Assembly: GCF_032062105.1 (NCBI RefSeq)
Contig: NW_026935833.1
Coordinates: forward strand, 124,001-188,000
Direction of reading: 5' to 3'
Origin: Saccostrea cucullata
Taxonomy: Eukaryota
Length of the DNA stretch: 64,000 nt
Under the pieces are notes generated by a model that did not search any database, was not told the origin of the DNA, and saw only the letters and a list, made by a program, of their open reading frames with translations. Of this stretch, positions 15,954 to 42,842 are shown piece after piece (within the stretch, counting starts at the first letter, position 1; each line of letters starts with the position of its first letter). The position numbers were made by a program, and so were the translations under genes.

Positions 15954-16841
15954 CACAAGGGCTAATTAAAAAACACAAATCAGCTAAGTATTGAAAAGTG
16001 TACTTGTTGGGGGAGGGGGGTTGCATCTTTTATTACTTGAGAATGCCACTACTAGTATATCGATAAAGCATACATATATATATAATTTCGCCATACATAT
16101 TTTTATGGAAAGATTTGATTGCCCATCATGGCCCCACCTTAACCCCAGGGGTCATGATATGAACAATCTTGAATTCACTCTGAGAATGTTTCTATTTAAA
16201 TATCACCTTTCATAGCTTTGCTGATCTTGAGAAAAAGATTTTTAAAAGATTTTACCTAGGTATTCCTATGTAAAACTTTGATCAGCCATTGTGGCCCCGC
16301 CCTACTCCCGGGGGCCTTTATTTGAACAAAATTAAATCTAAACTACCTGAGAATGGTTCCACATCAGTTTCATCTTTCCTGGCCTATGGCCCAGTGGTTC
16401 TGGAGAAGAAGATATAAAAAAATGTCCTATATATTCCTATGTAAAACTTTGAGCAGCCATAATTGCCCCGCCCTACCCCCGGGGGTCATGATATAAACAA
16501 AACTGAATCTACACTACCTGTGGATGCTTCCACATGAGTTTCATCTTTCTTGGCTCAGTGGTTCTGAAGAAGATTTTTAAAGATTTTTCCTATATATTCC
16601 TATGTAAAACTTTGATCAGCCATTGTGGCCCCGCCTTACCCCCGGGGGTCATGATTTGAACAAACTTGAAACTACACTACCTGAGGATGCTTCCACATGA
16701 GTTTCATCTTTCCTGGCCAAATGGTTCTGGAGATTTTTAAAAGATGCCATTAATTTTTCATTAATTCATAATTATCTCCCCTTGGAAGAGGGCTTGACCC
16801 TTCATTTGAACAAAGTTGAATCCTCTTCACCCAAGGATACT

Positions 16842-16984: not shown

Positions 16985-19461
16985 GAGGGCGCAATTAGCA
17001 CTTCCGGCATTGTTGTTGAGAGGTAAACAACTGAACATTCGGCACATTAAATGGATGGCGATTTTCTGTTAGATGAAGTAGATTATAATTATCTTGTTTT
17101 ATTGTTTAGTGGGAAAATTTTCGAAGAATCAGAAGAAAATGACGAAAAGTTTGAAGGATCAAACCCCACAGTTATACATGTTAAATGCACACATATCGGA
17201 GAGAAAAGAAATCCACTACGGCAAGGAAATACTTTTTACTGTGGCAACTTTGAAAGATGGTCATATCGGGCAATATTTTTGTGATTTAACAGATCGTTTT
17301 ACTGTGTTCTTTCCATGTATAAATAGGTACACTCTGAGGAATACTGATCAGGTCCAGCACAACCTCTTGATTAAGCTATATAGCTTTATCTAGCTATATA
17401 GCTTGGTTGAGCTATTTAAAATAGCTTTATTAAGCTATTTGGAATATGACATATTGAAATAAAATTCTTAAAATTAAAAACAAGAGAGTCGCATCATGAG
17501 TACTTGTCAACAAGTTCACCCGTGCATAAAAAATACTCACTAAAATCAAGGTATAAAAGCGATGCGTGTGGGGCGCTCATCTTAATGAAAGGTTTGTTGT
17601 TGACAATGAAACGGTGGAGATTGGCAGATTAAGTGTTTAAGTGTAAAAAATAAACCATGAAAACTAACCCACTGGAGCATCATAGTTCAATTCCCTCCTG
17701 AGCGCTCTACACCGGATATGCTGTATTCAACGTAGTTACAGAAGAAACCCGAATAACGGTAACTTATCCGTCATCCTCTGGTAAAGTATGGAAACATAAT
17801 TTCATTATAAATGCATTTAATGAATCATTGGTGTGAAAGTTAAACTGGTAATCAATAAAGAAAGATTTTAATTTGACAAGCGGAATAAAACAGTCGTATA
17901 ATTTATGATTTTAGCACATAAAAGACAGAAAATACATTTTTTATATAACATGAATATTTTATTTGAGGGAGGGGGGGGGGAGAGGGGGTTTGGTGTTAGT
18001 ACAGAACATTTAATTATTTTTTGGGATAAAAATGCCAACTTGTAGCTGTAGACAACATACAACCTTTGCAAAAGATGAACCTTTTAAAATATATAGACTT
18101 TCTAGTAAAAAATACAAAATTTTAGTTGTTGAAGGTATCGTTGAAAATGGCCATCTGTGTAAAAGAGCAGTGTATTTATGTACAGCATGTGCTGCGTATA
18201 ATGAAAAAAACATAATTTCCAATGAAAAAAACATTCAAAATGAACTTGATCAAGTTATTTATTTGATTTAAACAAACAACAAATCTAAATGAGAATCTGA
18301 TGAAAGCTAGATATCATTGAGATGGTGGCCATCTCAAAGGGCCCCGCTTTTAGCAATGAACGTGAAAATGTAACATAGCTGAAAAGGGTTTATTTTGAAG
18401 GTTTTTGAGATTAAAGGGGACAAAAAGTATTACTCCCTGAAAAATAATACAATTAAAAAACTTTTAGAAATGTATCCTCTATGAAAAGTGTTGCATATCC
18501 CTATCATAATATACAGCTCAACGCACTTTGGTTTTTCGCACAAATTAAGGTTCACATTGTTGTAATTAAAATTACCATTTTCGAACTGCAGTACAAAGAT
18601 ATAACCCTACGTTATATTACATATGTAATGTTCAAGCATAGATGTCTTTTAAAATTATTATTTTAAGTTTCCAAAGTGGATGTTTTTAAGGGGAATTTAT
18701 ATGTAAATGGTACGATGTTTCGACTATACGATTCTACCATAGTTTTTAACAATTTTATAAAAAGAGCTTTCCTTGATATCATGTAGTTGAAATTTTGAAT
18801 TTTTTTTTCCCTTAAAGGTGAGTAGTTTTTAAAATTCTTTGTTCATTTACCATACTCCTCTTGGTTTTGATGAAATGTAGCGCCGAAAAGGGATAACATT
18901 GCAATAGGAAACCACACTAGAGGGAAGGATAATAAAGTATTGTTTATTTTTTTTCAGTAGTAAATTCCTTCTATGAAAAGGAAAATTCCTCTGCATTTAC
19001 GGTTTGAAAGGTTAGAATTTTGCAGAAGGATGAATCTCTCATGAGTCCAGATTTTAGAAGTTGACTCTGAAAATCCCACCTTTTTAACATACAAAGCAGT
19101 CAAACAGATGAAAAATACTATTATCACCCCGAGCTAAAGAGTCAAAGTGTACAGAAAATACAAGCTGGCAGTAGGTAAACTTTGTCCATGTCTACGTTTC
19201 TGCAAAGAGCTGTTGCTTTCAAAAGAATGTATAAAAAGACAATTGCAATTGACAAGAAACCACAAAAATTCAAATGAGAGTAGCTGTTATTCTTCAGCCA
19301 TGAAAATATCAAAGTTCTGCCAATTGATATGTTTGAATTATGTTTTAGTAAATGAAATACCCCCGGTAAAACTCAAATAATGTAAAAGAATACTTTTAAA
19401 ATGTATTTTGATATCTCGATACACAATATTACATCATAACAATGTGACCTTAATTTGTGCG

Positions 19462-20370
19462 AAAAACCATGTGAGCTTAAAAAGTGCGTTGAGCTGTATA
19501 TTGAAGGAAAATCACAAATGTTCCATATCCAGTCCATTTGTTTGAGGCTTAGTGGACTTAAGGGAAAGAAATTATGCAGCAAACAAAGACTTTAAAAAGA
19601 GAGGCTTTGACCTTGACCCTTGACCTAGAAACTTTGTTCAAGGTCACTGCACATTCACTGACCAAAGGCATTCTGTGAGTGAAGTATGAGCAACATGCTC
19701 CGAGCAAGTATTTTTCATATAATTTTGCTATGACCTTAACGTTCGACCTAGAAACATGGTTAAAGGTCACTGCATATCCTTTACCCAAGGGCACTCTGTT
19801 TCTGAAGTATGGGCCAGATTAGGCCAAGGAAAGTGAAAATATGCTCCAGACAGAAATTTAAACAGAAAGGCTATTTTTGAGCTTGACACTAGACCTTGAA
19901 ACTTACCTCAAGGTCACTGCACACCCTTTACCCAAAAGGCACTCTATGGGTGAAGTATGAGCCAGATTGGGCCAAGGGGAGATAAGATATGATCCGGACA
20001 AGGATTTTTCATATCATTCTGCTATGACCTTGACCTTTGACCTAGAAATATAGTTCAAGGTCATTGTACACTGCATACCCAAAGGCACTCCGTGGGTGAA
20101 GTATGAGCCAGATTGGGCCAAGGAGAGAGAAAATATAATCCGGACATTGATTTTTCATATCATTCTGCTATGACCTTGACCTTTGACCTAGAAACATGGT
20201 TCAAGGTCACTGCACACCGGTTACCCAAAGGCACTCTGTGGGTGAAGTATGAGCCAGATTGGGCCAAGGAGAGAGAAGATATGCTCTGGACAAGAGATCT
20301 CGGACGGACAGCTGGACGGACAGATCTAGACTGATCACTATATAGGGCGCCCGGCGAGCGGGGCCCTAAT
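19462..20370 (-). mobile_element. HINE-type element with ~146-bp tandem repeats (gaccttgacctttgacctag family)
   Basis: gaagtatgagccagattgggccaagg recurs at 146-bp spacing (19952, 20098, 20244); (ggac)n microsatellite; terminal hairpin tagggcgcccg...cggggccctaa. Confidence 0.7.
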
Positions 20371-21701
20371 TACTGAAGCCATTGACACTACCGAAAGCAA
20401 AAGAATGATAGGCCGATTTCAATGACAATACATTTAGTCAATACAAGTATGTTGATTTTTTAACATCTGCCACTATTGATACGTGGATATCTGGAAAACA
20501 AAAAACAAAAAAAACAGTGTCATATCTTCATTGTTTTTGTCATTATGTGGGAAAAATATGTCAGATTTATCATCTTCAGAAAAAACAATTGTGTTTCCTA
20601 TTGAACATTTGTACTCTCTTCTATCTTCCAACATAATCAGGCCATTTTCATTCAGTCTGAATCTTTTAACATATTTTATGTCAAATAGCAAAACAGTTTG
20701 TAACATGTATTCTTCCGCCCATCCTGCTGGAAGTTATACTTCTGTTTTGAAATGGATAGCACAGCATGGAACAACACCTCTCACCATTCCATTCCAGCAT
20801 GACGTGTCAACATTTGATAATAACCAAGTGTTAGCAAGGAACTGGAGGGTGCGCTATGACGCCAAAGCTATTCTGAGCTATGTCACGACAGTTGTCCATT
20901 TCTTCCCTAATCCAACTACCGATTTACAACTTGTCCATAATTTCTCTCCCAGACACTGGTTTTACAATATTCAAATATCAGAGAAATACAGTGCTATTTT
21001 AAAATTCATAAATTTATATGAAAATGTATTTAGATCACTTCGTGAAGATTTCATAGAAAGCAGGATACGTGTTTTGTTACAGCATCAGCATCCAGGACTA
21101 AATTATACACAGGACGTCGTTTCTGATCTTTTAAAAAACAAGAACAAGAAATTTTCTGATCATTCAAAGTCCCAGGTTGATGTGTATTCTTTTTTATCAC
21201 ATTCACATAGTAGCCCTCCGAAAATTCAGATGGGAAATCCAATATCGGTTAAACCGCGTTCCTTCAAATCTGTACAAGCTGTGCTAGAGAATTTAAAGTG
21301 CACTGCAGGGATCCCCAATCATAGACAGTGGAGTATAGTAGGTTGTGATGGGCTTCCCTTCCTTCTGTCTCACAGAACTATTAAAAAGATAACCCCCATC
21401 TTCAAGATTTATTCCTTCAAACTGGACTGGGGCATGTTGAAATTAATATGTCCACAGGTACTGTCTCTTTCGTGAAATAAAATTGAATGAATTTTATTAA
21501 ATTTTATACATATATAATTATATAAAATATAACAAAATTCATTCAATTTTATTACATATATTACAGCTGTCATAAAGCTATTATGATAAGTAATTGGGGG
21601 TAGATTTGGCAAAACTATTAGATTATAGATCACCAAAAGCACTGCAGTCCTGCCAACGATAACCACAAGGCCATGCATGCAGTTCATTGAAATTCTTCTT
21701 T

Positions 21702-22814
21702 TTAGCTCTACTGGTCAGAGACCAGAAGAGCTTATGCGATAGTAATGCGTCCGTCGTCCGTCCGTCTGTCTGTCTGTCTGTCTGTCTGTAAACAATTTTT
21801 CAAAATGCTACTCCTCCTACAGTTTTGGTCCGATTTCAATATAACTTGGCACACAAGTAGACTATATTAAGATACATAATTCTGTGCATCGGTTTTTGAT
21901 TTCATTGATCGGTGTTGCTGTGGTTACTAAAAATAGAAATTTCTGTGAAATTCTTTCAAAATGCTACTCCTCCTACAGTTTTGGTCCGATTTCAATATAA
22001 CTTTGCACACAAGTAGACTATATTAAGATACATAATTCTGTGCATCGGTTTTTGATTTCATTGATCGGTGTTGCTGTGGTTACTAGAAATAGAAATTTCT
22101 GTGAAATTCTTTCAAAATGCTACTCCTCCTACAGTTTTGGTCTGATTTTAATATAACTTGACACAAAAGTAGACTACACTAAGGTACATAATTCTGTGCA
22201 TCGGTTTTTGATTTCGATAAACTGTGTTGCCGTGGTTACTAAAAATAGAAATTTTTGTGAAATTCTTTCAAAATGCTACTCCTCCTACAGTCTTGGTCCG
22301 ATTTCAATATAACTTGGCACACAAGTAGACTACACTAAGATACATAATTCTGTGCATCGGTTTTTGATTTCAATGAACGGTGTTGCTGTGGTTACTAAAA
22401 ATAGAAATTTCTGTGAAATTCTTTCAAAATGCTACTCCTCCTACAGTTTTTGGTCTGATTTCAATATAACTTTGCACACAAGTAGACTACACTAAGATAC
22501 ATAATTCTGTGCATCGGTTTTTGATTTTGATGAACTGTGTTGCCATGGTTACTATAAATAGAAATTTCTGTGAAATTCTTTCAAAATGCTACTCTTTCTA
22601 TACTTTTGGTCCGATTTCATTATAACTTGGCACACAAGTAGACTATACTAAGATAACATAATTCTATGCATAGGTTTTTTGTTTGATAAGTGGCAAGGAT
22701 CACTTTTTTTTACTTATTACTGTTTTAAAGTCTCAAGTCCCAACTGCTACTTTTCTCTTCCTTTGTTTTAAGTATAAACCAGTAGAGCTACAGTCTCGAC
22801 AGAGACTTCTGGTT
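21702..22814 (+). mobile_element. HINE / CvA-Pearl-like element, 156-bp repeat family
   Basis: subTIR agctctactgg...ccagtagagct, (gtct)n, ~5.5 units of 156 bp, 3' hairpin agtctc-gaca-gagact. Confidence 0.88.
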
Positions 22815-24058
22815 TTAACAGGTCTGTTAAGAGAAGTGTTCATCATTTTAATAAAATAAACAAAATTAATATACATAAACATTTATTTTCTTTTTTTCAA
22901 ATAAATCTATACCTCTAAGCATTTCCTATCCATAGGGGGGTGAATTGTTGTTCCCCTGCATCTATCATTGCTAGGAAAAGGTAATGGAACCTTCTGGGAA
23001 AGGCTTTTACGCCTGGTGTAAAGACGTAAAGGATCCAAAGTACATGCTGGAGTCCATTTTCACGTATGTACTAGCAGTGTACATGTTCAGAGGTGGGATA
23101 AGACGTAATAACAGCAACGTCATTATGGCCTCCAGAATGAAGTTTTCTCCCTTAATTTTGGTGTGTCCAAAACAAGTACCAACAAATTGAAATGCTATGC
23201 ATCATTATGAGAGTACTAGTCTGTGCACCAACTGAAGTCCTCCAATTCATCCAGGAGCACGACTCCTTCTCTCGTAAGCTTAAGACAGCATGCCCTAACC
23301 TCAACTGCACAATAATGCAAAATGACGCACTTAAATACTAACTTTATTTCCTGCCTATCTTGTGAGACGAGATTTGATTGGTTTGATGGTGGGTGTAAAT
23401 TTCCCTACAGCCGACTTGATTAGTTAAAAAAATGTGACGTCACAAATAACGACGTCAACATGCATTAAATGCATGAAGAAAATATGCACAGTTTGAAACA
23501 CCCATTTTTGAACTAGGTTTTAAAAAAATGATTTCATTACATAACATTAATTAGTTATCCAGGTTTAATGAATGATGTACAGGGATTTGCTCCAGCATTT
23601 ATTAGTATTCTATACACCATGAAGGTGAACAATAAAGAATTTGTGCAATACGTCAATGCATGGGTAAAAACCCGTACACCCTTGAATGAACCGTGGATAG
23701 AATTAACATAAAATTTCTAACCACTTTTTCTTTTTGTTATCCTATGTAGGATATCTATATTTTTTCTGTTTCCTTGGGTTTAAGAGAATTTTTTCCCGAC
23801 CGTATAAATATTTAGAATCTGGAAATGAAAGCAAAGGAGAGGGTTGTGATTTTATATTGGAGGCCAAAAATAGACAGGCTAAAAGCTGGCTTCCCAGTGG
23901 TGCACCAAAGGAGAAACACTGGGTGCAATGTTGCAGAAACTGGATACACTAGAAGATGCAAGTATTTTACAAACATATTGGTATAATAAACATGAATAAA
24001 AGAAAAAAAAGTATTTAAAACATAGTAGGAACTTTTATTACAGACATGAAATAGTTGT

Positions 24059-27000
24059 TCATCTGTGTACAGGACACCTAAACTTTGTTTGCTTAACAAT
24101 ACTGTTTGACGAAAAATAAAACCCCATACATTCGTCATGGACCCAATACCCACACATGGCACGGTCACATCCCAATGTCCACGTGTCTGTGTGGTCAAAA
24201 AACATTGCAAGTGTCGGGTACTTTACTAGTAATTCTTTCAGTCTGCGTGCACTTGCTCTTGCATAACATCGTGCCAACCCTTCTCTTTTCTTTGAAATCT
24301 GATATCCATCTGATCTGTTTCCCTTTCCTCCTGATTCATTGTTAGTTTTAGAGGGGAGAAAAGTAGGTTGAGATGGAAAAGTAGGAGAGGGAGAGGAAAG
24401 TGAAGGTTCTGGGAAGGGTGCATTTGAGGAAAGTATGGGAGGTATTGACTGGGTAGAACAATGTGGGGTGGAGATAAGTTCAGCAGAGGTAGAAGACGAG
24501 CAAGTCGTAGTAACAGAGGAAGAGGAGGATATAGAATTTGTTCTGACAGGGGGTGGTGCGCTAGAAACGTTAGAGGGGGAAATTTTATGAATCGATGAAT
24601 GTGCTGAAATATATCATGAATGCTTGTCTTTAACGAAAAAAAAGGCGGAAAAAATTCATTCAACCAATTCTTTAAATTAATAAATATCATTGAATGAGAT
24701 TTGTGTATTCCATTATATACTAACATCCATAGGGGCTTGTCTTCCGGATTGTTAAATGTAATATAAATTTTAAAAATTTTGAATCTTCTTTAAATACACT
24801 TAACAGTTGTTAAAATAAAGATCCTGACACTTTCAGGCAAGAAAAACCATGTTTAGAAAAGACGTACCACACCTATATACATAAACTCTATAAGGGACGC
24901 AAGCTCCCATCTTGGAAAAAATACCCCCGCCCACTTCAGCGCCTATTTTTGGACTCTAAACCATTAATTTATTTCGGTATCATGGCTCTGTCCCCTTACA
25001 GTGATGATTTTCCTAAATGTTGATGCGATTGTCAGTCGTGAACACGCGTTTAATCAACAGTAAACGGATACAATTTCTTCGATTTGAGCTCATCTCGCTG
25101 AATCGACCCAAAAAGAACGGAAGTTGACATGGTTGCATGGTAACGACGCAAGGGCGATAATCGTGGTATAGCATATAGCGCGCTTTTAAATTATGTAACA
25201 AATTACTTATATGTTAAATGAGTCTTCCCAATGACAATTTAGCCTGTGAAACCAAACTTTAGCCCGTATTTATCATTTTTCACTGTCTTTTTCTTGTCGG
25301 TAAACATTTTTCTCCGCGAAGCTGGAAATCCTTGGGTGTTACCATTCGCTTTCGATTACCCTCTGAGTTTTCCCTATACAATCATTATCTGCCCATGCAA
25401 TTTTGTCAACTTCCGATGAGCTCAAATCGAAGAAATTGTATCCGTTTACTGTTGATTAAACGCGTGTTCACGACTGACAATCGCATCAACATTTAGGAAA
25501 ATCATCACTGTAGGGGACAGAGCCATGATACCGAAATAAATTAATGGTTTAGAGTCCAGAAATAGGCGCTGAAGTGGGCGGGGGTATTTTTTCCAAGATG
25601 GGAGCTTGCGTCCCTCATAGAGTTTATGTATATAGGTGTGGTACGTCTTTTTTAAACGTGGTTTTTCTTGCCTGAAAGTGTCAGGATCTTTATTTTAACA
25701 ACTTTTAAGTGTATTTTAAGAAGATTCAAAATTTTAAAAATTTATTTTACATTTAACAATCCGGAAGACAAGCCCCTATACTAACATCTTCAAAGAAAGG
25801 CGTGGCATACGTGGACATTTTTCCAGACGGTGATTTAACAATAACTAATATTTCACTTTTACTTGTTAGATGGAGTTCTTTAGCCTGTTGAACAATAAAT
25901 TAAGAATATATGATACAGTATATATAAACAAAACATATTGCATTGTAGATAAAAAAGAACATGAAATCCCAAATTAACATCAGGAACTCCAGTGAAGAAT
26001 TGATTTTTCACACCAATCTTGATAATGAGACATTTCAGTGGCGTGCAAAATTAAGATCATCCAAATATCTCTCCAATCCCTTCTCCTCCAACGATCATAC
26101 TTCTCTGTGCAACAAATAAAGAACTAGATAAAGAACTAGATAAAGAACTAGTAAATTTTTCCCAGAAATGCAAAACAACCGGCAACATTATATTCAAGAA
26201 GTTTCTAAAAATAATTCTGTCTAAATATCAATAGGGCGAGAAAGCGGAAGTGCGAGATTTGGCGTGAATTGAACCTCTGGAGATAAACAAATCCGCGCAT
26301 ATACATAGGCAATATAGATTTCTTGTTTTTAGTGATACAGAATGATACAGAATGGCATTGTCCATTCTGTATTGGTTGAATTTTGTATCCGGGACTAAAA
26401 AGCTACACCAGAAGTCTGAAGTGGCTGTGAAATCTGAACACGTACTTAAATTCCTGTACGATCCTGGGCTGAGACACGTCCAGGGAAGGGTGCAAGCCAG
26501 CATGAGGGATAGAAGCTATCATATTAACGTATGTATCAAATTGTTTTATATTTTATAATAATAATATATAAGTACATAAACGACATTATTTTCAATATTT
26601 CGTGTTGCATTTAGATCACACTTGGGGATAATTACACTGTGGAAGACAGTATCTGTGACTGTGTTAATGGCCAGGATAAGTGTCACCACAAAGCTTCTCT
26701 TCTGTTATATGGGTATGCATTTTTTTAATACAATAAAAAATATAAATGATTTTTTCCTTCATTTTATCACAGGTACTTGGGTCGTGGTTTATAAATATTT
26801 ATAATGTACCTTATTGATATGTAAAATACTTTTTTTACATATCAATAAGGTACATTATAAATATTTATAAACCACGACCCAAGTACCTGTGCATTTTATA
26901 AATGTTATTCATCTTAATTTAGGTACAAGAATGTTAGTAAGACGGATGTAAGAGAATCTTGGATAAAACACCCAAAGAGTGGACCCCCAAAGAAAACGAT

Positions 27001-30000
27001 GACCATGGAAAAGCTGAATGACCTTGGTCGATTTTCAGGTCTTGATTTGAAAAAAAAAATGTTGAAACATGTTTTGTTCTTTGTTTAATTGAAAATGTTT
27101 ATACATGTTTCCTTATTTTGTTATGTGACCAGACTAACAAAATATTTTCATTCAGTTTTTGTTGAAATGAAGTTGAGCACTATCAGACTTTCCTGCATAT
27201 TGAAAGCAAAGTGTACGAGATATCCATTGAAAGTGTTTGCATATACTGTATATTGAGAAAATGTTAAAGTATTGTTATTTGATAGACTAATTAAGTATAA
27301 CCCATTTTATTATTAAAATCAAACCATAACTACTGTATCATTTTAGATTAATAAAATATACTCATTTCAATCATTCATACATTTATAATTTATTAATTCT
27401 ATTCAAATTGTTAGCCATGCAATGGATAGTTTCTGAAGAACCCCCTGCTCCCAAAGTGGATGTTCCATGCGTAGAGGATCTTCTGTTAACGGAAGGTTAC
27501 ACAAGTGCGACCAATAAAGTGCAGTGGCTTAAAACAAACCTCCGTGTATCGAAGCAGCAGACAGAACAAGTAGGACATTTATATAAGTATACTCTAGAAT
27601 TATTATGAATTATAAATACTTTGAATCAGTCCCCACCCATTCTTTATTATTTTTTTTTGGGGGGGGGGGTGTACTTTGATTTTATTCCTTTCTTTTAGTC
27701 TCTGTTGAAAATACGGATTGGCCAGATCACCTAATCATTATTTTAAATGTAAAATGAATCACTTCCTTAAGATATTTTAAGATTGAAACAGTAATGAATA
27801 TGTCTAGATGTCAAGTGTATAATGCACACATCAGTAAATACAAACCCATTTTGAAAAATGTGGGTCAGAGTATACAAATCAATTTTTTAATAATGATGGC
27901 ACAACACTCATATTTCAACTGATTAACTTTCAAGAGAGGGGATTACATTTTGTAAATATTGTACTTGACATGTCTTCAAAAAGAAAAAAAAAATATATGT
28001 GACATTAAAAATAAATATTAAATTGAAAATTATGAATATCATCCATATATCATTTTTACACAAAATATTTTTTAAACTATATTAATACATGTAGTACCAA
28101 CTATATTATTTTGCAGGTGGCACAAATGACATGTGGTCAACGAACAAATTATCTTTGGGCTTTGGTTAAAAAAAATCGATTAACGGCATCAAATTTTGGT
28201 GTGGTACTATCGGCAATAAGAAGACAGAGGTAGTACTTTTTTTCTCATCCAAAAGTAAAGTTAACGTATCTTATACAGGTATATTACCTTGTTCAAGTTA
28301 AGTATATAATTTACTTTCAACTGAGGAACTATTGATATATTTTTCAGATTCCCACCATCATTATATAAGCAAATCTTTTCCTCATACAATCTCTCGACAA
28401 AGGATGCCATATTATGGGGGATCAGTAATGAGTCAACTGCTAGGACAAAATACTGTTCATTTGGAGATGCTATTGTAGAAGAAACTGGTAAGTGCATGTG
28501 CTTATGTGTAATTTATAATATAGCCCACAGGTTTCAAACATCTTAAAGGACAAGAATTAATTTAAACAATTTTAAATATTGGAATTGAACGTGAAAAACA
28601 CCAAACATATTTATTACAGGTGTATGGCTGCATGAGAGTGGCATATTGGGAGCCAGCCCTGATGGAATTATTCGACGCGCAGCGACACACAATTACAACT
28701 ACCAGGATGTAGAATTAACAGACCTACTTGAGTGCATGGCTGTTAAACCAGAAGTTTTGGAGGTGAAGTGCCCATTTAGTGCAAGGAATATGTCAATTCC
28801 CGAGGACATAGAATCTGTCAAAGACTTTTGCTTGGGTAGGTTTTAGTTTTAAGGTACAATTTCCGCAAAATCTGAAATCTTGTTTAAGGAATGGTACATA
28901 TTTAATACAAAGTTTATTATTTCATGTCTCAGACTACCAAATATATGAAGGAAGGAAGTTCTACAAGTTAAAGGAGGGCCACAGATATTACGATCAGGTG
29001 CAAGGACAGCTGCACATACTTAACAGGTCATCATGTGACTTTGTAGTGTGGACTACGAAAGACATAGCTATTGTGAGAATTCTTCAGGACAGCACCTGGA
29101 CCCCAAATATGTCAAAACTCATCGATTTTTACTTTTGTAAAATAATCCCAAATATTGTTCAGGACTGACATTTGGTTAGTATGACATCATATAGGCAATT
29201 TTGTATATTTGTACTGATATACGGTAGGTTTTTTATGAGTGACTTAAATTGAAGTTTTTGATTAGTGATTACCAGTAATCCCAATTTATACACATACAAA
29301 TATGTTATATGTTTATGTAATAATACAGTGAGTTGTAGGGCAATGTCAGACTTGTATACCTGCTACATTGAATATTTTGGGACTTGACTTGAACCGCTTA
29401 TTTTCAGTAATCATGAGGCACTATTTATAAGGAATCTTATTGTTATACATATGTACTCGGGGTAAAGCTGGAAACCAACAACAGAAGTTATACTTTGTTT
29501 TCTGAATTATTTCTGAAAGTTTTCTCATCATTACACATAATCATGAATAATTATTTCTTGAGTTTTATATTGTATTGATTGATTTTTGCTTGTAGTGTAT
29601 TTCAGGTTGTTCTTAGTATTTCTTACCACTTAAAAATACACAATATAATTTTTTAATACAGTGAAAGATTTCTTTCAGAACTGTAGAAGAAATAAGTTAA
29701 GTATTCTGTTCAAATGTCTTTTTAAATATATATATATCATAAACTGTGTAATAAATTTTTGACTGTATATGCTTTTTTTTATCTAGTCGAATACATGTAA
29801 GGCCATGCAAAGTTAATTACTTGGTTCTCAGGCCTTTTTTCAAGAAATATGATGAGGGAGGGAGGCATTTTTTTTTTCTTTTTTATTGCCCCCAAAACAT
29901 GACGAGGCAGCTTTTTACATTGTACAAATCCTCAAAAAATGATGAGGGAGGTGATTTGGTGTTTATATTTTATTGATTTAGCATTAGAAAGGGTCAATGA

Positions 30001-33000
30001 GGCACCCTTGGAAGAGATGAGGGAGGGCCTGAGAACCAAGAAATTAATTTTTTTTTTGCCTAATATGCAAGTAAACAAGAGACGAAGTGATGAAAAAATA
30101 CATGTAAATTTTATGTACAATATGGAACTACATTTTTTGGTATTTCACATATTCCATGTAAATATTGGACATCATTTTGTCAAAGAATTATTTCATAACA
30201 ATTGTACTGTTCCATTATCCAAAGAGACTAATGACTCAATGTATTAAAAAAAATGGATAAAGAATAGAAATTTACTATAACATATGTAAAATTTGCTAGC
30301 TTTCATGATATTATAGAATTTAAAATATACATGCTTTTTTGCAAAAAATAATGATAAATGGAGTATTTTCAAAGAATCTTTGTAAAGGTCAATGACAACA
30401 TACTATTTACCTTAAAATGCTCTTTTCAAAGTTGTTTACAAGATTTATGATACATATAATACAACCTTTATTTTCCTGGCACTTATACATAGCACTCTAC
30501 TTGAAGCAAGGTTGGGTTTGTCAAAACTTTGTTACACTTACATTTACAATATCAATTTAGGGTATGAATATCATAAAAGAAATATATGTTAAAGCTGAAC
30601 ACAATTACAAATACTTGGAACCTCTCATGAAATAAATTACATTTGCTCCACCTCTACATTCTTATATCATATATTAATGAGTGTCTAAATCTTGAGCCTG
30701 AATGTAATTATCTGCAATCTCTGCAATCATTGGATCTTGAAAATTGACTAGTATAGAACATACTTGAAAAATTTTCGTGCTTAAATGTCTAAACTTGTGA
30801 GGAATGTGAGATAATATCTCAAAGTTCTTAATTCTTTCATTTACCCGCTCTACATGGATACGAGATCTGGCAATTTTTCTGCACAGTTGCACTTCGGCAG
30901 GAGTGTATTGTCCTTTGTCTTTCAAGAAAGGAGGGATGTTGAGATGCACACCTGCTGGAAGGAGAGAGTGAATAGTAAAACCTTTATCAGCCAGAATCAT
31001 ATCCCCTGGTTTCAACTGGCAGAGCATTTTACTGTGTTCAACAATGGCCACATCAGATGTACTTCCTGGGTAAAGTTTGCTTACATATACCACAGCTCCG
31101 TTAGGGGCAACGCCTGTAACAGATTTTACGGTGTGCCTGTTTTTATATGAGCTATAAGTTTGAGACTGTGCTAACATATCCTGCCCTGGAACGTCTTGGG
31201 TCACCTCTGTCGCATCGATCACAAGACGGCAACAATTAAAATCACCAAAACTTGTCGGCATAGAGGACTTGCACTTTAAGAGGGAGGGAATGTTATTTTC
31301 AATCATGCCCTCAAAGAACACCTCATGCAAAGCAAAAATATGTGTAACCACAATATTTTGCACTGTTGTCTTACTTGTATTGAACCTCTCAGCTAAATCT
31401 AAATTGGGAGAGTTTAGCTTCAATTTCATCAGTGTCATTAATAACTGGTCAGTTCTTGAAATCACTGCTGGTGTCCAGTTGTTGACATATGTTAATGGAA
31501 ATCTCTGAATAGTTGAGTCCACTACTCTAAACATGTCTGCTTTCAAGGAGGTGTACATCAGCATCTAATAAAATATGAATTTATGGAATGTAGTTGTTCT
31601 AGTTTGTTATAAAGGTAAAATAATTTCTCATACTGTATATAATTGCATAGAAAACGGTTGTATTTTTTAAGGTTGAATTATTTAGAGGGATTGACCTGCA
31701 AAAATCATTTTTTTTTATAACTCACGTATAACATGGTATAAGTTGGATGAAGAGTTTTGGACCAAAGTTTAACTCCCAAAAATCAATCTACTTATAGGTG
31801 AGTTTATACAGTATATGCGATTTGAACAAGGACTTATTGTTGTTTAACATCACTCTCATGAATTTTTCACTTATATGGAGATGCCTTCACTTGCCAGTGC
31901 AGGGCTACAAATTCTGACTATACTCGGCACTTATGGCCTTTGAGCAGTGAGGGATGTTTTTCATGCCAGCACTTACTGGGACCTCTGTTTTTACAGTCTC
32001 ATCTGAAGGACTGGTCTCCATCCCGCAATGGGATTTGAACCCGGGAGGTAAGGATCAACTCCTTATTTCACAATGCTCTAACCACTTCACAGAGGGAGCT
32101 ACATTGGAACAAATAATGTATCAGTCAGTAAAAAAATGGATACCTTCTTTTCATCATTGATGATCTGGCTTATGGTGAAAGGTTGTTTCCTAGTCTTAAG
32201 AATAGCTATTTCTGATGTCAGCTTGTCAATTTGTTGTTCCATTTCCTTCAAAAACCATATAAGTGTGTAACTGTTTTTTTTACAACATTGTACACAAAAC
32301 AGAGTTTAAGTACTACAATACTAAATACATGTACTACTGAAATTTTTATACTCACTTGGATTTGTTTTAATAAATTTGACTCTTTATCGCAGTAGGTGCT
32401 TGTAACGGTCCCGTGTCGCAGTAGATGCTGGTCATGGTCAAAACCCTCACTAAATGATTGAATTGGTTGTGCAGCTTCTGTCTCTTCCACCATAACCGCA
32501 TTTTTTTCTCCCTGGTTTACAGATGGGCTCTGTTTGCATTGTCTGTATGTGTTACATAATTTGCTTATAACTAACTACTTCAAATTTTTACATATATTCT
32601 GTCAGATTTTTTTAACTTCATAAATTTATATTAGCTGTTGATAGAAAATATTTTGTTATTGAATAAATTGTATGGTAAAATGATGTCTCAAAATAATGAC
32701 ACAAAAATATTCAAAACATACCTTGAAATAGCATTAGGGTCTCCAAAGTCAAAATACTGCCCTTGATTCCAAGGGAAGATGGTTGGTCCATTTTCTTTTT
32801 TTCCATCTTTGAAATGACAGCTGCATATTCTGTCAGCTGCAGTTACTGTCCTATCTTGTCTCCTGAATTAAATAAATTATATTCTAATTATACGTGTAAA
32901 TATAATCTAGACAAAGATTTGATGTCCGAGTACTATTATTTTCAATTTCATAGCTCTTGTAGATTCACCTCCCCTCTCCACCCGTGCTCTCGTGGGTGAT

Positions 33001-33898
33001 AATTCGGGATAACTTTAAGTTGACTATAAAAGACCACTGTTACAATGAATCAGAATATATTAAAAAGTGAAATACAACACTGATAACTCTGTATTCTTAA
33101 GCTGAATTCAATTTCATGCATTAGGTAACATGTTATAGGCGTACGATTGAAAGGACAGTGTATAACCCGACATTCCTCTGTTATATTTTGAGAAGTGTTT
33201 TTTAAATAAAACATCATACCTGCAAAGTTTTTTCCCATATCTTTATTGATTTCTTTGGGAACCTGAAGAAGCTGCAAGTTTCCCGCAAGCTTTGGTGGTT
33301 ACAGCTCGCCACAAATCAAAGCATTTTTCACGAGGTGAAACCGGCAATATTGAACCGAAAGCACATGTTCGTAATGTTTATCTCCAGCAGCCAAACCGGA
33401 AGTGACGCACAAACGAGACTTTCTTGCCCTATTTCTCTTGAACCTATTTTCTTTACAAGTCTTGAACGTTCTCACTTTCATTCTATCGAAAGTAGAACAA
33501 AAGCAGAAATAGCAGCCAAGATGGAGGAGCAGATTGAAAAACTGCTTGATTTGGATTTTGAAGCTGGTATGCAAATTTCATAATTGTTGCGTTTTTAAAA
33601 TAAAGATATACATACGCATGCATATCTAAAATAAATCATTTTTTTATTGTTAAAAAAGGAGAAGACAGGAGGAGAACGCAATGGAAGAGAGATATAAAGA
33701 ATGGTGGGGAAAAATGTACATTAATTTCTACAAAGAATTACTTGAAGTTGTAGAAAGTTCCCAAGATGTCATGAAGGAAGAAGGTTCATTAGATTTTCAT
33801 ACCTTTTTTAAGAGTGTATTTTTCCTCTTGTACACTGAGTCGTGTCTTTTTTTAGCATCCTCAATATAAGTACTTGGTGCTGGTCCACCTCTTGCCAT
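24059..33898 (-). CDS. Spliced MADS-box + S/T/P-rich linker + PHD-like finger gene (exons 33898-33803, 25884-~25782, ~24603-24059); possibly decayed
   Basis: Exon 1 MARGGPAPSTYIEDAKKRHDSVYKRKNTLLKK joins exon 2 AKELHLTSKSEILVIVKSPSGKMSTYATPFFEDV through a phase-0 GT-AG intron, giving the MADS pattern IE..R....KR..L.KKA.EL.......IV.S..GK...Y. Exon 3 is an open S/T/P-rich frame ending WTLGCDRAMCGYWVHDECMG...FRCPVH*. The exon 2 donor is uncertain and the first PHD CxxC pair appears eroded. Confidence 0.72.
24728..25779. mobile_element. Foldback/MITE with ~366-bp near-perfect TIRs
   Basis: 24729-25094 is the reverse complement of 25415-25779 with few mismatches, around a 320-bp non-coding spacer. 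TSD (a)ctaacatc, 8-9 bp, at 24719-24727 and 25780-25788 (hAT- or MULE-type). Confidence 0.9.
26352..29168 (+). CDS. SWIM zinc finger + YqaJ (lambda-exonuclease-like) protein, 8 exons, ~415 aa
   Basis: Exons approx. 26352-26528, 26615-26712, 26923-27038, 27415-27569, 28117-28229, 28348-28487, 28620-28835, 28933-29168; all GT-AG with compatible phases and no stops. Motifs CDCVNGQDKCHH (SWIM), RLTASNFG, WGISNE, LGASPDG, LEVKCPF, YYDQVQGQL, CDFVVWT. Confidence 0.88.
26768..26891. mobile_element. 124-bp palindromic MITE (hAT-type)
   Basis: 59-bp perfect inverted arms (cacaggtacttgggtcg...) around a 6-nt loop. 8-bp TSD cattttat at 26760-26767 and 26892-26899. Lies in intron 2 of the YqaJ gene. Confidence 0.9.
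29801..30060. mobile_element. Tourist-like (PIF/Harbinger) MITE
   Basis: GGC...GCC termini, imperfect ~34-bp TIR containing cttggttctcaggcc / ggcctgagaaccaag, and a TAA TSD on both sides. Confidence 0.72.
31633..31811. mobile_element. Degenerate Tc1/mariner-type MITE in a transposase intron
   Basis: Ends tactgtata (31631) and tatacagta (31805-31813), consistent with a TA TSD plus short TIR. Confidence 0.4.
31838..32086 (-). mobile_element. Diverged Deu/Nin-like tRNA SINE copy
   Basis: Reverse-complement similarity to 1683-2025 (gtctcatctgaaggac, gagcagtgagggat, ctcggcact), with a B-box-like gggttcaaatccc. Confidence 0.7.
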
Positions 33899-35631
33899 GC
33901 CCCTCTTTTTTTGCCCTTTGTTGTTTTTCCCAGGGTTTATTTTACTATTCTGTATGACATTACAACAGCATATATTATATAATTTAGTTAATTTTTAATA
34001 AAATTAAAAATTGGAACAAGGGGGTAGGGGTAGTGTCAAATTATCTTAATTTTCATAAGTATCGTGAATATAAATGATGACCGTCAAGCGAAAACCACCC
34101 TTATGTGCATTATGACGTTATTGAGAAAACGAGCGCTAAAGTTGACGTCATGAATGTTTGCCGAATTTTGCAAATAAATGCAGTGTTAAACGCATCATTA
34201 ATTATAATATTTCTTCATACAGTAAATGCATATACTAAACAACATAATGAGTAGTCGTAAGTATAATTATCAAAGTCCACTGTTTAGTATGAAAAAAATG
34301 ATTTACAGGAAACTGAATGTGAAAATCCTTTGAAGTAGCGAATACCACAATCTTCGCCTTTATTTTCATTTTATAGGAAAATTTTCTTTTTACTTCTAAA
34401 ACACGAATATGGAGGAGAAATTGCATATTATCTTATGACTCGAGCAGCAACAAAATGGACATAGATCTACTCTTATTGAACATTATTTTTGTCACTATTT
34501 ATTGATATTTTTCTATATTTATGATAAAAAGCATAGAAAACCTAAACAAAGTGTAAAGCCAAGTCGTTGGATTTCATACAAAGGTGTGCAAGTTTATTGC
34601 AAACTAAACAGCGTTATGTACCAAAAATCAAAAACAAGCTTGAAGAAATGGTGGGGCGGGTCACAGAAATATAATTTATCAGTATATAATTAAGGTTGGA
34701 TAACAAAGCCCTCAATACAATTTCACCGGAAAAATATACTTGACTATGACAAATGAAAAAGTTCGTTTTGTTTTGCTATGAAAAAGTTCATTTTGTTTTG
34801 CTATGAAAAAGTTCGTTTTGTTTTTTTTTTCTTATTCCTTGTCAAGACCCCCCCCCCCCTAAAAAAGAAATGAAAAATAAATCGCTTCCTATATGATATT
34901 TTTTAATACGTTGGAATAATAATGAAACATAATGAATCCCTCGATCAGTTAAAGACGAATGCAGCCTACATGTTTTAGGAAAAATTGAAAATTATCATAA
35001 AAATGAAGTCATTTAATCTCTAAATTATGTTGTATCCTAGTACTAAATGGTTTGGGGTGGGTATAAGCAACTTGTACTTTGATAAGGTTATAGAAATTTA
35101 ATTATTAAATTGATTCAAATAAAACTTGAAACTGATGAAATATTTAGCATGTGGCTAATATACGTAACTCTATAACTAAGCTATTAAATTTTTAAAAGAG
35201 GGCAGCCAGAGAAAAAAAAATAACTTACCTGAGAAAAGGTTTACAAGCAAAATGTCCAAACTCGAAATCCTATTTCGTGGGGGGGGGGGGGGGGGGAGGA
35301 GAATAAGCCAGCAGGAAGCAGACATGCAGTGGGATTAACACCATATTCAAGGCTGTTTTTACAACCCGTTGCACCCCTCTCAACAGAATTACGACAGGTG
35401 CATTATGCACAGGACTATTCTTATGAGCTTTCGATTCCGCTCCACGTGCATGTACATGTATGACAAGTTGACCTGCAGTTAGCTGCAGAACTGTAACTCT
35501 CCGAAATATTTTGACAGACCGGGCTGTAAAAATATTTTTTTCGGAGAGCTACAGTTATGCAGCTAACATGCAGTATTTTCGGAGTACTTATTTGGCCATG
35601 TATGGTATACTTAGTACATGTACATATAAAA

Positions 35632-35652
35632 CTCTCTCCTTCTATCTCTCTC

Positions 35653-35702
<50 letters not shown>
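35632..35702. repeat. (CT)n microsatellite
   Basis: More than 20 consecutive CT dinucleotides plus an imperfect 5' extension. Confidence 0.95.
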
Positions 35703-35705
<3 letters not shown>

Positions 35706-36764
35706 AGGTTTCAATGATTTTTGCACAAATTGTCTCACGTCACTCTCCATCCGCATTTATGTCCAGAATTTATGAGCGAGGGTCGTATATTTTGGTCATT
35801 GTTTTCGAAGGTGTATTTCAGGGAAACTTTTAGATTCTATAAGCGAAATCAGGTGTTATTTTAAAGTGTCCATGGGACAACGCTTCATGTATCATTTCTT
35901 TTCAATATAAAAACTAATGTCACGCCAGGTGCACGAAACGCATGCTTAAAAGAGCAAGCAGCCATTACCCTTTCCCTTTAAATTTTACGTTTTAAAAACC
36001 TTATCCTGTGCGGAATTTTCATCCTGATAAATATTTTTCTTTTATTAAAAAAAATATGGACCCTATGGCCACACTGTAAAATTACGAATTCACACCTGTT
36101 AATGCATTTTTATATGCATAACTGAAACAAATACGCATGTAGGTAATGTTTTAATTGTCTTAATTTTAGAAAAATTATTGTCTACAATTAAGCAGGAAAA
36201 ACATATAGTCAATTATTTTCAAATAATTAATTCTTTACCTAAAAGAGACATTTATTCATCATGGAGACTTGCTATCAGTCAAAAATTTTACTTCCTTTGC
36301 AAGCCCTGTACATTGATAAAAGATGGTGGATGTTGGAATCCCTTTAATAAGTAAAATAAGTACATATGTATATAGAGACGGAGATAATTTTTTCGATTTG
36401 TGAACTTGCTTTCCACCACGAGGCGCGACAAATGCTTATTTTCAGAACATAAGAAAGGAGGGGGGCTGTCCTTCCAATTACTGGAAGTTCAGTACCAAAT
36501 TTAAAGTTTTAGTGGGTATAAATTATATTGCAGCAATGTGTATTATATGCATCTTTAATGCAGTGTCAGAGATGACAATTGCTTTGATAAAGCTCTTCAA
36601 GCCATTTGAGTGAGATTAATACAAAGATACAATCGAATCTGTTCCTCAAACTGCTCCACAAAAGAATAAATTGATTTGGAAAAAAACCCACAAAGACAGA
36701 AAGTATTTTCGACGAACACCTTGATTTAAATTATGTGTGAAATAATATACTTTCTCTCTCTTCG

Positions 36765-36967
36765 CGGGTTCGAATCCCGACGTGGAGATCGGTCCTTCGG
36801 ATGAAACCCTATAAACCAAGTTCCCGTGTTGCAGTAAGCGCTGGCACGAAAAGATCCCTACCTGCTCGATGGCCCTGAGTGCTGAGTATAGGACAAAATT
36901 TTTCTCCACCGGAAAGCGGTGGCAGCACTCATATGAAGATATGAGTGAAACATTCTCGAGAGGGACA
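36765..36967 (+). mobile_element. 5'-truncated Deu/Nin-like SINE copy
   Basis: B box gggttcgaatccc, ggtccttcggatgaaacc...aaaccaag, tggccctgagtgc, and atatgagtgaaacattctcgagagggac, all matching the 1683-2025 SINE. Confidence 0.75.
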
Positions 36968-38099
36968 TTTCTCTGGAAAATGATAGAACCGTTTGTCATC
37001 AGAATGCCCCTTATTAGCAGACATAATTTCCGTCTTCCGAATTTATTTAAATTCGTATACATGAGACACAGGAAAGTTTTTCTGTGGCCTTATAAATTTA
37101 GATATCCACAGCGTTCATCTGTTATCAATTCGCAACAGTTACTTTCATTAATATGTCGACTCGACATACCATGATCATGAAATTGTTCAAATTGTTCAAT
37201 CATAAAATGACGAGAACAACTTTCTGAAACAAATGAGCTTTCAAACTATCAATCTAATCTGAACTGTGTACATGTAGGTGTCTGTTTTTTAAAGGGGGAG
37301 GGGGGGTACATAAAAACCTGATATTTCTTCTATAATGCTAAAATTATCGATCATAAAAGGTGACAATAACAATGTAATTAAATAAAAATCACTTATGTAA
37401 TGTCATTTGTTGTCCGAGGTGATTTTTCTTGTGGAGTTTTTACAATGGTAATGTGAGATCAACGAAATTGACGTTGTCCGATAAAACACGGCGTCATAAC
37501 GAAGAATTTGTATTTTTTATTTGAAAAAATTAACTAATGTTTAGTCTTTGAACAACATCATGTTATATATCATTTAAAAGAGGAGAAAATTATCTATCAG
37601 GATCAATAAACAACTCAAAATGTCAAAATTTTCACTTAAGGGTGGTTTTTGCTTGACGGTCATCAAATAAGTGTTTTATTTTTTTGCTTTAATATCATAT
37701 ATTTTTCAATCCCTTCCGTTCTTTAATAGGCAAAGTAATTGCAGAAAATTAATGCGTTACAAAGACAATAATTTGAATACAACTGTGCTTCCACAGATTC
37801 TCAGCCGGAAGATGAAGATCTGCCTGATTCTGTATCAACGCTTTAGTATTGATTGTGCATTTCCTGTATTGGCGACTAGGACTTCCAAAGCACATGTACT
37901 TCAAATTGTGAGTGTTGTCATGGATTTTACGACTATATTTCGATACTTTTCATGGCAGTTTTGTAAACTCTGCACAAGAAACACTTTATGAAATGGATAA
38001 AATTTTTATGAAGGCAATGATGGATTTTTAAATTATCGCTGCTTAATACTGTATTACGTCATAAAGAAAAATATTTATACTTACCATTATGCGATGTTT

Positions 38100-39350
38100 T
38101 TTAGCTCTACTGGTCAGAGACCAGAAGAGCTTATGCGATAGTAATGCGTCCGGCGTCCGTCCGTCTGTCTGTCTGTCCGTCTGTCTGTAAACAATTTTTC
38201 AAAATGCTACTCCTCCTACAGTTTTGGTCTGATTTCAATATAACTTGGCACACAAGTAGACTACACTAAGATACATAATTCTGTGTATCGGTTTTTGATT
38301 TCGATGAACGGTGTTGCCGTGGTTACTAAAAATAGAAATTTCTGTGAAATTCTTTCAAAATGCTACTCCTCCTACAGTTTTGGTCTGATTTCAGTATAAC
38401 TTGGCACACAAGTAGAATACACTAAGATACATAATTCTGTATATTGGTTTTTGATTTCGATGAACGGTGTTGCCGTGGTTACTAAATATAGAAATTTCTG
38501 TGAAATTCTTTCAAAATGCTACTCCTCTTACAGTTTTGGTCTGATTTCAATATAACTTGGCACACAAGTAGACTACACTAAGATACATAATTCTGTGTAT
38601 CGGTTTTTGATTTCGATGAACGGTGTTGCCGTGGTTACTAAAAATAGAAATTTCTGTGAAATTCTTTCAAAATGCTACTCCTCCTACAGTTTTAGTCTGA
38701 TTTCAATATAACTTGGCACACAAGTAGACTACACTAAGATACACAATTCTGTGTATCGGTTTTTGATTATGATGAACGGTGTTGCTGTGGTTACTAAAAA
38801 TAGAAATTTCTGTGAAATTCTTTCAAAATGCTACTCCTTCTACAGTTTTGGTCTGATTTCAATATAACTTGGCACACAAGTAGACTACAATAAGATACAT
38901 AATTCTGTGTATCAGTATTTGACTTCGATGAACGGTGTTGCCGTGGTTACTAAAAATAGAAATTTCTGTGAAATTCTTTCAAAATGCTACTCCTTCTACA
39001 GTTTTAGTCTGATTTCAATATAACTTGGCACACAAGTAGACTACAATAAGATACATAATTCTGTTTATCGGTTTTTGATTTCGATGAACGGTGTTGCCAT
39101 GGTTACTAAAAATAGAAATGTCTTTTAAATACATTCAAAATGCTACTCCAAATACAATTTTAGTCTGATTATAATATAAATGTGGCATGCAAGTAGACTG
39201 CATTAAGAACATAAAGAGACTTAATCAAGGATCATTATTCTATTTATTGCTGTTGAAAAGTTTCAATTTCCAACTGCTTAAGTACTTTTCTCTTCCTTTT
39301 CTATAAGTACAAACCAGTAGAGCTTCAGTCTCTACAGAGACTTCTGGTCT
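38100..39350 (+). mobile_element. HINE / CvA-Pearl-like element with ~6.5 x 156-bp tandem units
   Basis: 5' hairpin/subTIR agctctactggtc...gaccagaagagct, (gtct)n, units starting at 38201, 38357, 38513..., 3' subTIR ccagtagagct plus hairpin agtctc-taca-gagact; T-rich flanks. Confidence 0.9.
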
Positions 39351-39801
39351 TTTTGTGCACTTGTCGATTTTGTTTAAACTTCGTTGAATACAATTGAAAT
39401 TTTCATTAAGATCAGCGCCCCACACGCAATTTTATGCTTGTGTATTTTTTGCCCTGGCAAGGAGAAAACAGAACTTAACAGAAGAACCAAAGAACTTACA
39501 TACAATGTGTGATCTGGCTGAAGAGGAAACTACTCAAACAGGAAAACAGAATTCATACCATGTATACATTTATTTTATACCACCTATTTGGCAACAGATT
39601 TCTTGCAGAAGAAAAATATCTCATAAATGCAAACAGTGCCATGCCTTGTTGTCTTAAATACATTAACTTGCTTGAAAAGGTGTCAGTGGAGAGACTACAA
39701 TATTGTAATCATTATTTCTCCTATCTACAATAGGTGTGCCATTGAACATTGTCAAAGAATGTAAATAAATGGTCAGACTGTAGGAAGAAGTAGCTAGTGC
39801 T

Positions 39802-42740: not shown

Positions 42741-42752
42741 GACTACTTCTCA

Positions 42753-42783
<31 letters not shown>

Positions 42784-42784
42784 C

Positions 42785-42842
<58 letters not shown>

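Follow-up and report, generated by a model that had tools for sequence, protein, structure and literature searches.

In two-gene DNA transposons of the PIF/Harbinger type, the transposase is accompanied by a separate gene for a Myb-like DNA-binding partner, and we know of no exon interleaving between the two genes there. To our knowledge, animal MADS-box genes are few and comprise SRF and MEF2. Academ transposons generate target-site duplications (TSDs) of 3–4 bp (AcademX) or 9–10 bp (AcademH; PMC10045372), have a mean length of 5565 bp among curated bivalve elements (PMC10294476), and are most abundant in Pucciniomycotina (PMC5751038); a preprint on Puccinia striiformis (stripe rust) reports DUF6589 to be enriched in pathogenic fungi (10.1101/2025.10.24.684071). 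The articles that cite N-RAG-TP of Aplysia (Panchin and Moroz 2008, cited in PMC8355894 and PMC8374863) describe it as a molluscan transposon protein with a region resembling the RAG1 N-terminus. Here, we analyze an element within a 64,000-nt stretch of the genome of the oyster Saccostrea cucullata (contig NW_026935833.1, positions 124,001 to 188,000; hereafter the window, numbered from its first letter), which an initial annotation had read as an Academ-like transposase gene entangled with an antisense MADS-PHD gene. Window positions 17349–39428 are one decayed copy of a multi-copy cut-and-paste DNA transposon family, enlarged by six nested insertions. The family very probably represents a transposon of about 6 kb with two convergent genes, namely a DDE/DUF6589-type transposase and a partner combining an SRF-type MADS box with a PHD finger, which are interleaved in the clade of the window copy.

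Within this element, the transposase and the opposite-strand MADS-PHD gene are nested in each other, some exons of either gene occupying an intron of its counterpart. MADS exons 2 and 3 are located within transposase intron 23958–25948, and the last two transposase exons lie within MADS intron 1, a phase-0 intron interrupting the MADS box, so that the pre-mRNA of either gene runs antisense to exons of its partner. The parts of the two genes, those of MADS-PHD being predicted, are as follows.

18032–18305, plus strand: transposase exon 1, first part; ATG at 18032, CxC...CxxC zinc motif; cut by an insertion.
20368–21457, plus strand: transposase exon 1, second part; first Asp in FDNNQ, VKPRS motif, second Asp in CDGLP.
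21560–21702, plus strand: transposase exon 2, limits approximate; placed by homology to the exon of copy C8196 (merged coordinates 8226–8081); adjoins insertion 2.
22942–23290, plus strand: transposase exons 3 and 4, fused; RRNN and YQQIE motifs; frameshift near 23165.
23806–23957, plus strand: catalytic-Glu exon; GEGCDFILEAKN; loss of 1 nt near 23940, leading to a stop at 23950.
23958–25948, plus strand: transposase intron containing MADS exons 2 and 3 on the opposite strand; splice sites conserved in four diverged copies.
25949–26232, plus strand: transposase C-terminal exon, first part; TAG acceptor upstream; tblastn E 4e-19 and 9e-5.
33433–33566, plus strand: transposase C-terminal exon, second part, ending ...LDLDFEAG; donor G/GTATGC; tblastn E 1e-18.
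33659–33792, plus strand: last transposase exon, frameshifted; ends about 10 nt from the MADS exon-1 donor.
33803–33949, minus strand: MADS-PHD exon with the first MADS-box half; ATG at 33898–33896; donor after 33803; Pfam SRF-TF positions 1–22.
25786–25884, minus strand: MADS-PHD exon 2 with the second MADS-box half (AKELHL...PFFED); Pfam SRF-TF positions 20–48; CAG acceptor and GT donor.
24059–24603, minus strand: MADS-PHD exon 3 with a Ser/Pro-rich linker and the PHD finger; coding to 24062, stop at 24061–24059.

The same order and the same splice sites recur in four diverged copies. C8196, C7048, and C12276, which are independent and diverged, show this order, as does C10814, and the layout is thus no product of chance. 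Here too, a block with MADS exon 2 and the PHD exon sits in the transposase intron that precedes the C-terminal exons. Together with C12099 and others, these interleaved copies form one clade (Shimodaira–Hasegawa-like approximate likelihood ratio test (SH-aLRT) support of 100 in a quick tree). Both the donor of the catalytic-Glu exon, which ends at 23957 with a GC donor (GAAGAT/GCAAGT), and the acceptor of the C-terminal exon are preserved in four copies that have reached saturation at synonymous sites. Between interleaved subfamilies, nonsynonymous differences (pN 0.14–0.40) stay far below synonymous ones (pS 0.40–0.80), with MADS, PHD, and transposase exons behaving alike, and both genes have therefore been under selection while interleaved. 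We found no published description of such a mutually interleaved layout. The exon boundaries proposed in the initial annotation were all recovered (for example 23957, 25949, 33566, and 33659). Its claim of mutual nesting holds in the exon and intron coordinates as well as in the four diverged copies, and other copies of the transposase do carry the antisense MADS exons.

Assigning the plus-strand fragments to one gene required relatives, since searches of the window's own transposase exons against Pfam gave nothing; a 330-amino-acid (aa) open reading frame (ORF) at 20483–21475 likewise matched no Pfam family, DUF6589 included. This ORF has at least 117 protein matches in its own 1.17-Gb genome, at identities from 80% down to 24%, and the protein of one relative is annotated at NCBI as 'uncharacterized protein LOC134231718'. 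For the searches, exons were used singly, or intronless relatives served as proxies, instead of a joined spliced model. Intronless relatives from the same genome (943–1139 aa) align to window positions 20492–21463, 22939–23272, and 23758–23943, and the segment 18032–18305 is collinear with a 464-aa open frame of C8196 and C12099. At the 3' side, the C-terminal exon of the interleaved copy C12276 matches window 25940–26236 (E 4e-19) and 33431–33571 (E 1e-18). Two relatives without interleaving have C-terminal exons that match the corresponding block of C8196 (E 1e-13 and 5e-15); one of these exons, from L029, also matches window 26009–26107 (E 9e-5), and residues 995–1109 of the intronless L016 ORF match the C8196 block beyond the antisense PHD ORF (E 1e-5). 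Because they are homologous to the C-terminal parts of relatives, 25949–26232 and 33433–33566 are the transposase C-terminus, as the initial annotation had supposed.

RNA contigs from one library that map to C8196 contain three splice joints with CT..AC ends, which correspond to GT..AG on the transposase strand. The end of exon 1 at 21457 was placed from a joint in this sister copy. The last transposase intron of C8196, which is 109 nt long and falls within MADS intron 1, is spliced in an RNA contig. The plus-strand fragments form one spliced transposase, as the initial annotation had read them. Oligo-dT raw-read runs yielded just 2–11 reads each. An 84-nt intron (L020 3779–3862) that is spliced in the C8196 RNA contigs is missing from the window DNA, where 22942–23290 forms one frame; within one transposon, subfamilies have thus come to differ by the loss or gain of an intron.

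For the partner, the gene model is a prediction drawn from homology, from splice-site conservation, and from the signature of selection. Each of the two MADS exons in the window matches one half of SRF-TF (PF00319; E 7e-4 and 5e-4), and the two join in phase 0 (...LLKK/AKEL...), restoring the MADS box. Exon 3 matches PHD_NSD (27.3 bits, E 4.5e-6) and also Pfam PHD. In relatives with an unsplit MADS box, SRF-TF scores reach 30.2 and 28.3 bits (cut-off 26) and PHD scores 25.4–25.6 bits. One of them, C13325, encodes both SRF-TF (30.2 bits) and PHD in a single 525-aa ORF, which is why we regard the MADS and PHD domains as parts of one protein, in line with the partner named in the initial annotation. 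Among solved proteins, the nearest to the partner is SRF (E 1e-4). A word search with the PHD exon returned unspliced exon fragments only.

The pairing is not confined to this locus. In a distant clade, with about 35% transposase identity, the same two genes are arranged tail to tail and do not overlap, and no intron divides the MADS box. Genome-wide, MADS matches adjoin transposase matches on C13325, C1240, C15692, and C12276, and one Logan contig from another sample holds the same transposase and MADS-PHD pair; it is the single contig that documents the layout in other species. The partner therefore belongs to the transposon lineage, as the initial annotation had anticipated, and the interleaving is known only from the window's clade.

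We delimited the element by comparison with C8196 and C12099, the nearest kin of the window copy (about 78–81% DNA identity), and with the deletion derivative C10814, which placed its start at 17349 and its end at or beyond 39428. Minus the nested insertions, it spans about 6 kb, comparable to the 6.2-kb copy C7048, which is filled by both genes. The terminal inverted repeats (TIRs) of the window copy are unequally preserved.

17349–17590, plus strand: left TIR; terminus CAGGTCCAGCACAA; matches both ends of C8196.
39401–39428, minus strand: right TIR, inner 28 nt; the outer ~215 bp are absent.

Collected copies allowed TIRs and TSDs to be defined for the family as a whole. Its TIRs are about 240 bp long and end in CAGG, with the arms of C8196 measuring 239 bp each at 92% mutual identity, and all three clean copies with both ends are flanked by perfect 5-bp TSDs (TTAAA, GTAAT, and TTAGT), as expected of cut-and-paste transposition by a DDE transposase. 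Each TIR carries 4–5 copies of a unit of about 18 bp centred on GC(A/T)6GC palindromes; in the left TIR of the window, an array of such AAGCTATATAGCTTTAT-type palindromic repeats occupies 17372–17440. Near the inner end of both TIRs lies an invariant TATA-like TATAAAAG block, represented at 17550–17559 by the inward-pointing GGTATAAAAG, which is invariant among the 10 TIRs aligned. Across the whole window, the 12-mer AGCTATATAGCT showed no enrichment (3 matches versus 1.85 expected), and only its clustering and conservation inside the TIRs stand out. A TIR search of the window's own genome gave 67 scored matches of 1006 first-look candidates. About 1000 first-look candidates match the outer 92–145 bp only, at 80–91% identity, and are probably short non-autonomous derivatives of the family. 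A further copy, C14394 (31500–41400), shares the left flank of the window copy and, at 90–95% identity, also its insertion site and element, but its nested insertions differ; it lacks window insertions 1 and 2 and has a different insertion instead. Because the left flank is common to both and the insertions differ, we interpret C14394 as the other haplotype or a duplicate of the window locus.

The transposase has an RNase-H-like DDE core. Its catalytic triad comprises D in FDNNQ, D in CDGLP, and E in DFILEAKN (family consensus DFxLEExN), and the corresponding residues D74, D329, and E578 are invariant or nearly so across 34 aligned sequences. A CxxC...CxxC zinc ribbon lies between the first and second Asp, and a helical insertion domain between the second Asp and the Glu. 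Foldseek against the PDB returned nothing at E ≤ 0.001. With VIA-align, the core of a relative, modelled with AlphaFold (AF2) at a predicted local distance difference test (pLDDT) score of 86, gave the following structural matches, all to RNase-H-like enzymes.

P element transposase, Z 11.9; ISCth4, Z 9.1; Hermes, Z 8.9.
Further matches: retroviral integrases, Z about 8; Tn5, Z 7.7; RAG1, Z 6.2.

Family membership was assessed against Pfam DUF6589 (PF20231; curated cut-off 27 bits). One protein, P0028 from the annelid Owenia, reaches 37 bits and matches our family profile at E 5e-192. Nine others (L017, P0001, P0003, P0004, P0007, P0008, P0029, P0163, and P0026) score 15–25 bits at collinear DUF6589 positions, below the cut-off. 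In the atlas, a relative is placed beside molluscan DUF6589 clusters (0.92), and the family profile finds 3566 cluster representatives, including proteins from Crassostrea virginica, amphioxus, and Owenia. The window transposase is probably a divergent member of the DUF6589 family, and its placement as Academ-like is likely but unproven. Some members also match the Pfam RAG1 importin binding N-terminal region (cut-off 23.3), with P0026 from amphioxus at 44.2 bits and P0029 at 34.5 bits; P0047, the L016 ORF (6204–9575, plus strand), and the L017 ORF (3945–7157, minus strand) match it below the cut-off. No MADS-PHD partner was seen in the members with a RAG1-like N-terminus.

How might the two genes work together? 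The GC(A/T)6GC palindromes of both TIRs can be likened to the CArG box CC(A/T)6GG bound by SRF. By analogy with the Myb-like partner of PIF/Harbinger transposases, or with the PHD finger that RAG2 contributes to RAG1, MADS-PHD could be an accessory factor that binds these palindromes and/or tethers the complex to histone H3 tails, a role to which we give somewhat less than an even chance. Whether each TIR drives one gene inward from its invariant TATAAAAG block seems to us evenly balanced. The interleaving itself, on a slight balance of probability, would have arisen when a segment of about 1 kb was moved, and no regulatory role is proven for it. In its boldest form, the proposal would make this an undescribed animal transposon lineage with 5-bp integration, in which MADS-PHD is a required end-binding and chromatin-reading subunit and the nesting in introns is a selected coupling or throttling device. 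We consider this combination rather improbable. If true, it would comprise the first transposon-borne MADS-box protein in animals and the second DDE transposase with a convergently encoded PHD partner, independent of RAG1/RAG2.

Several observations weigh against this picture or parts of it. In the one library with RNA on C8196, no read or contig covers the PHD exon, and joints were seen neither for the MADS introns nor for the long intron of the transposase. At the MADS start, C8196 and C7048 have no ATG. In the four copies compared, an AG acceptor at 33950–33951 and the coding sequence upstream of it are conserved at the MADS 5' end, which suggests a further 5' exon beyond 33949, and no such exon was found. 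The repeat units of the TIRs are equally likely targets of the transposase's own zinc finger. In the quick tree, the two MADS-bearing clades are not sisters and the deeper forks are weak, leaving the direction of change unsettled. The Academ label of the initial annotation stands in so far as the enzyme is a DDE transposase of the DUF6589 type with one member above the cut-off; the TSD is 5 bp, as against 3–4 or 9–10 bp, and no Pfam domain of an XPG-like nuclease or RecQ-like helicase occurs in any full-length relative. Moreover, none of the genome's three XPG_I matches is on contigs among the transposase matches listed, no XPG was seen beside DUF6589 matches in the genome, and no atlas cluster combines DUF6589 with a nuclease. 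The equation of DUF6589 with the Academ transposase is a presumption, and we found no literature link between the two.

Of the competing explanations, the one that survives best holds, as the initial annotation proposed, that the interleaving is functional. Convergent transcription would then limit the transposase through interference or double-stranded RNA, and the two genes would also be locked together, because an internal deletion could not keep one without the other. The layout has outlasted synonymous saturation with purifying selection on both genes, both TIRs have the same inward TATA-like block, and the transposase stop falls within about 10–30 nt of the MADS exon-1 donor, all of which such a device would accommodate. 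However, no antisense transcript was seen, the sole RNA coming from the transposase strand of a sister copy, and the tail-to-tail clade retains the pair without overlap. In addition, MADS-PHD survives in full in C10814, a deletion derivative, along with the two ends of the transposase gene, which makes any gene lock leaky. We judge a functional interleaving to be improbable, and prefer a two-gene transposon in which no regulatory role of the overlap is proven.

It is distinctly improbable, in our view, that MADS-PHD is captured cargo without a part in transposition, a regulator acquired from the host that is simply carried by the element or targets host genes. Elsewhere in animals, MADS proteins are transcription factors of the host, and clades in which no partner was detected (L016, L017, L021, and L022 loci) are numerous and intronless. 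Against this, the gene is retained inside the TIRs in two clades at about 35% transposase identity and is under strong purifying selection. It is also distant from the host's MADS genes, with the genome's two strong matches, taken for host genes, scoring 76 and 75 bits on C23005, compared with 27–34 bits for MADS-PHD. Lastly, the six nested insertions and several frameshifts of the window copy could suggest an accident of the locus, in which a host MADS-PHD gene or a second element was invaded by transposase fragments and insertions, but this hardly credible reading is ruled out by the other copies, which show the same order within one TIR pair with 5-bp duplications at no fewer than three unrelated loci, in subfamilies 57–80% alike.

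The preferred reading, a transposon encoding both a transposase and a MADS-PHD partner, concerns the family; the window copy itself is old and non-functional. Both of its genes are broken, which corrects the first reading of the locus. Six blocks are called insertions because they are missing from related copies. They correspond to those proposed initially, except that the first starts at 18306 rather than 19462.

18306–20367: nested insertion 1; tandem repeats of ~147 bp; missing in C14394.
21703–22816: nested insertion 2; (GTCY)n microsatellite followed by a 156-bp satellite; same repeat family as in 38102–39347.
24727–25777: nested insertion 3; foldback element in MADS intron 2.
26233–33432: nested insertion 4; 7.2 kb, composite; flanks contiguous in C8196 and C10814.
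34079–37664: nested insertion 5; 33-bp TIRs (TGATGACCGTCAAGCGAAAACC...); no long ORF.
38102–39347: nested insertion 6; 156-bp satellite element.

The transposase gene is cut by insertions within exon 1 and at exon 2, and the 7.2-kb block (26231/3–33431/2) splits its C-terminal exon. Frameshifts affect the transposase near 23165, near 23940 (stop at 23950), and in the last exon, and MADS-PHD at the start of exon 3 and within the PHD finger.

The insertions have features of their own. Insertions 2 and 6, one in each half of the element, share (GTCY)n, 5–6 units of the 156-bp satellite, and a common 69-bp tail. The foldback element (24727–25777), located just beyond the MADS exon 2 donor, has arms of 268 nt (97%) and 102 nt that are 97–99% complementary. 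Insertion 4 harbours an intact-looking 296-aa PIF/Harbinger transposase ORF (30674–31564, minus strand; DDE_Tnp_4, E 4e-39, with HTH_Tnp_4), together with plus-strand fragments containing a SWIM-like CxC...CxH motif at about 26615–26725 and a plus-strand YqaJ-like exonuclease fragment at 28595–29165 (E 7e-4). Among the nested insertions of C14394 is a satellite array spanning about 4.6 kb, with a unit of ~165 bp, which is also found at window 16094–16733 and 42743–44233. Just beyond the element, a 218-aa ORF (39979–40635) contains a GDGHCYFFHC motif with the look of an OTU-type cysteine protease and has no Pfam match at E ≤ 1.

A conserved transposon-borne protein joining an SRF-like MADS box to a histone-reading PHD finger would be a new kind of accessory protein for DNA transposons, and the pairing offers a testable model for how elements find their ends or targets. 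Interleaved genes that stayed under selection while their divergence reached saturation are rare, and the present case is cleanly dated; it also includes the origin of an intron within a MADS box. In the annotation of oyster genomes, the many copies would otherwise be taken for unusual 'MADS' or 'PHD' genes of the host.

Compared by description only, the element resembles Academ in its DDE transposase of about 900–1100 aa, its length of ~6 kb, its abundance in bivalves, and the presence of a second activity beside the transposase, and the fungal ranges of Academ and DUF6589 fit loosely. It is unlike Academ in its 5-bp TSD, in that no XPG- or RecQ-like domain was seen, and in its opposite-strand MADS-PHD partner. 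RAG1/RAG2 and ProtoRAG share with it the convergent arrangement of transposase and partner, a partner ending in a PHD finger, and a 5-bp duplication (PMC8355894), and the N-terminal Pfam domain of RAG1 occurs in some members of the wider family (44 and 34.5 bits). Unlike in RAG1, however, the core is nearer to the P element (Z 11.9 versus 6.2), and RAG2 has a kelch propeller rather than a MADS box. A RAG1-N-terminus-like region is likewise common to the wider family and to N-RAG-TP, again as described in the articles citing the latter, whereas the window's own clade has a CxC...CxxC N-terminus. The RAG1-type N-termini would place N-RAG-TP-like elements, the proposed source of the RAG1 N-terminus, in the DUF6589 family. 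PIF/Harbinger differs in its unrelated DDE_Tnp_4 transposase, its 3-bp duplication, and its Myb/SANT partner, but, with a DDE transposase and a separate DNA-binding partner gene enclosed by the same terminal repeats, it provides the best functional analogy.

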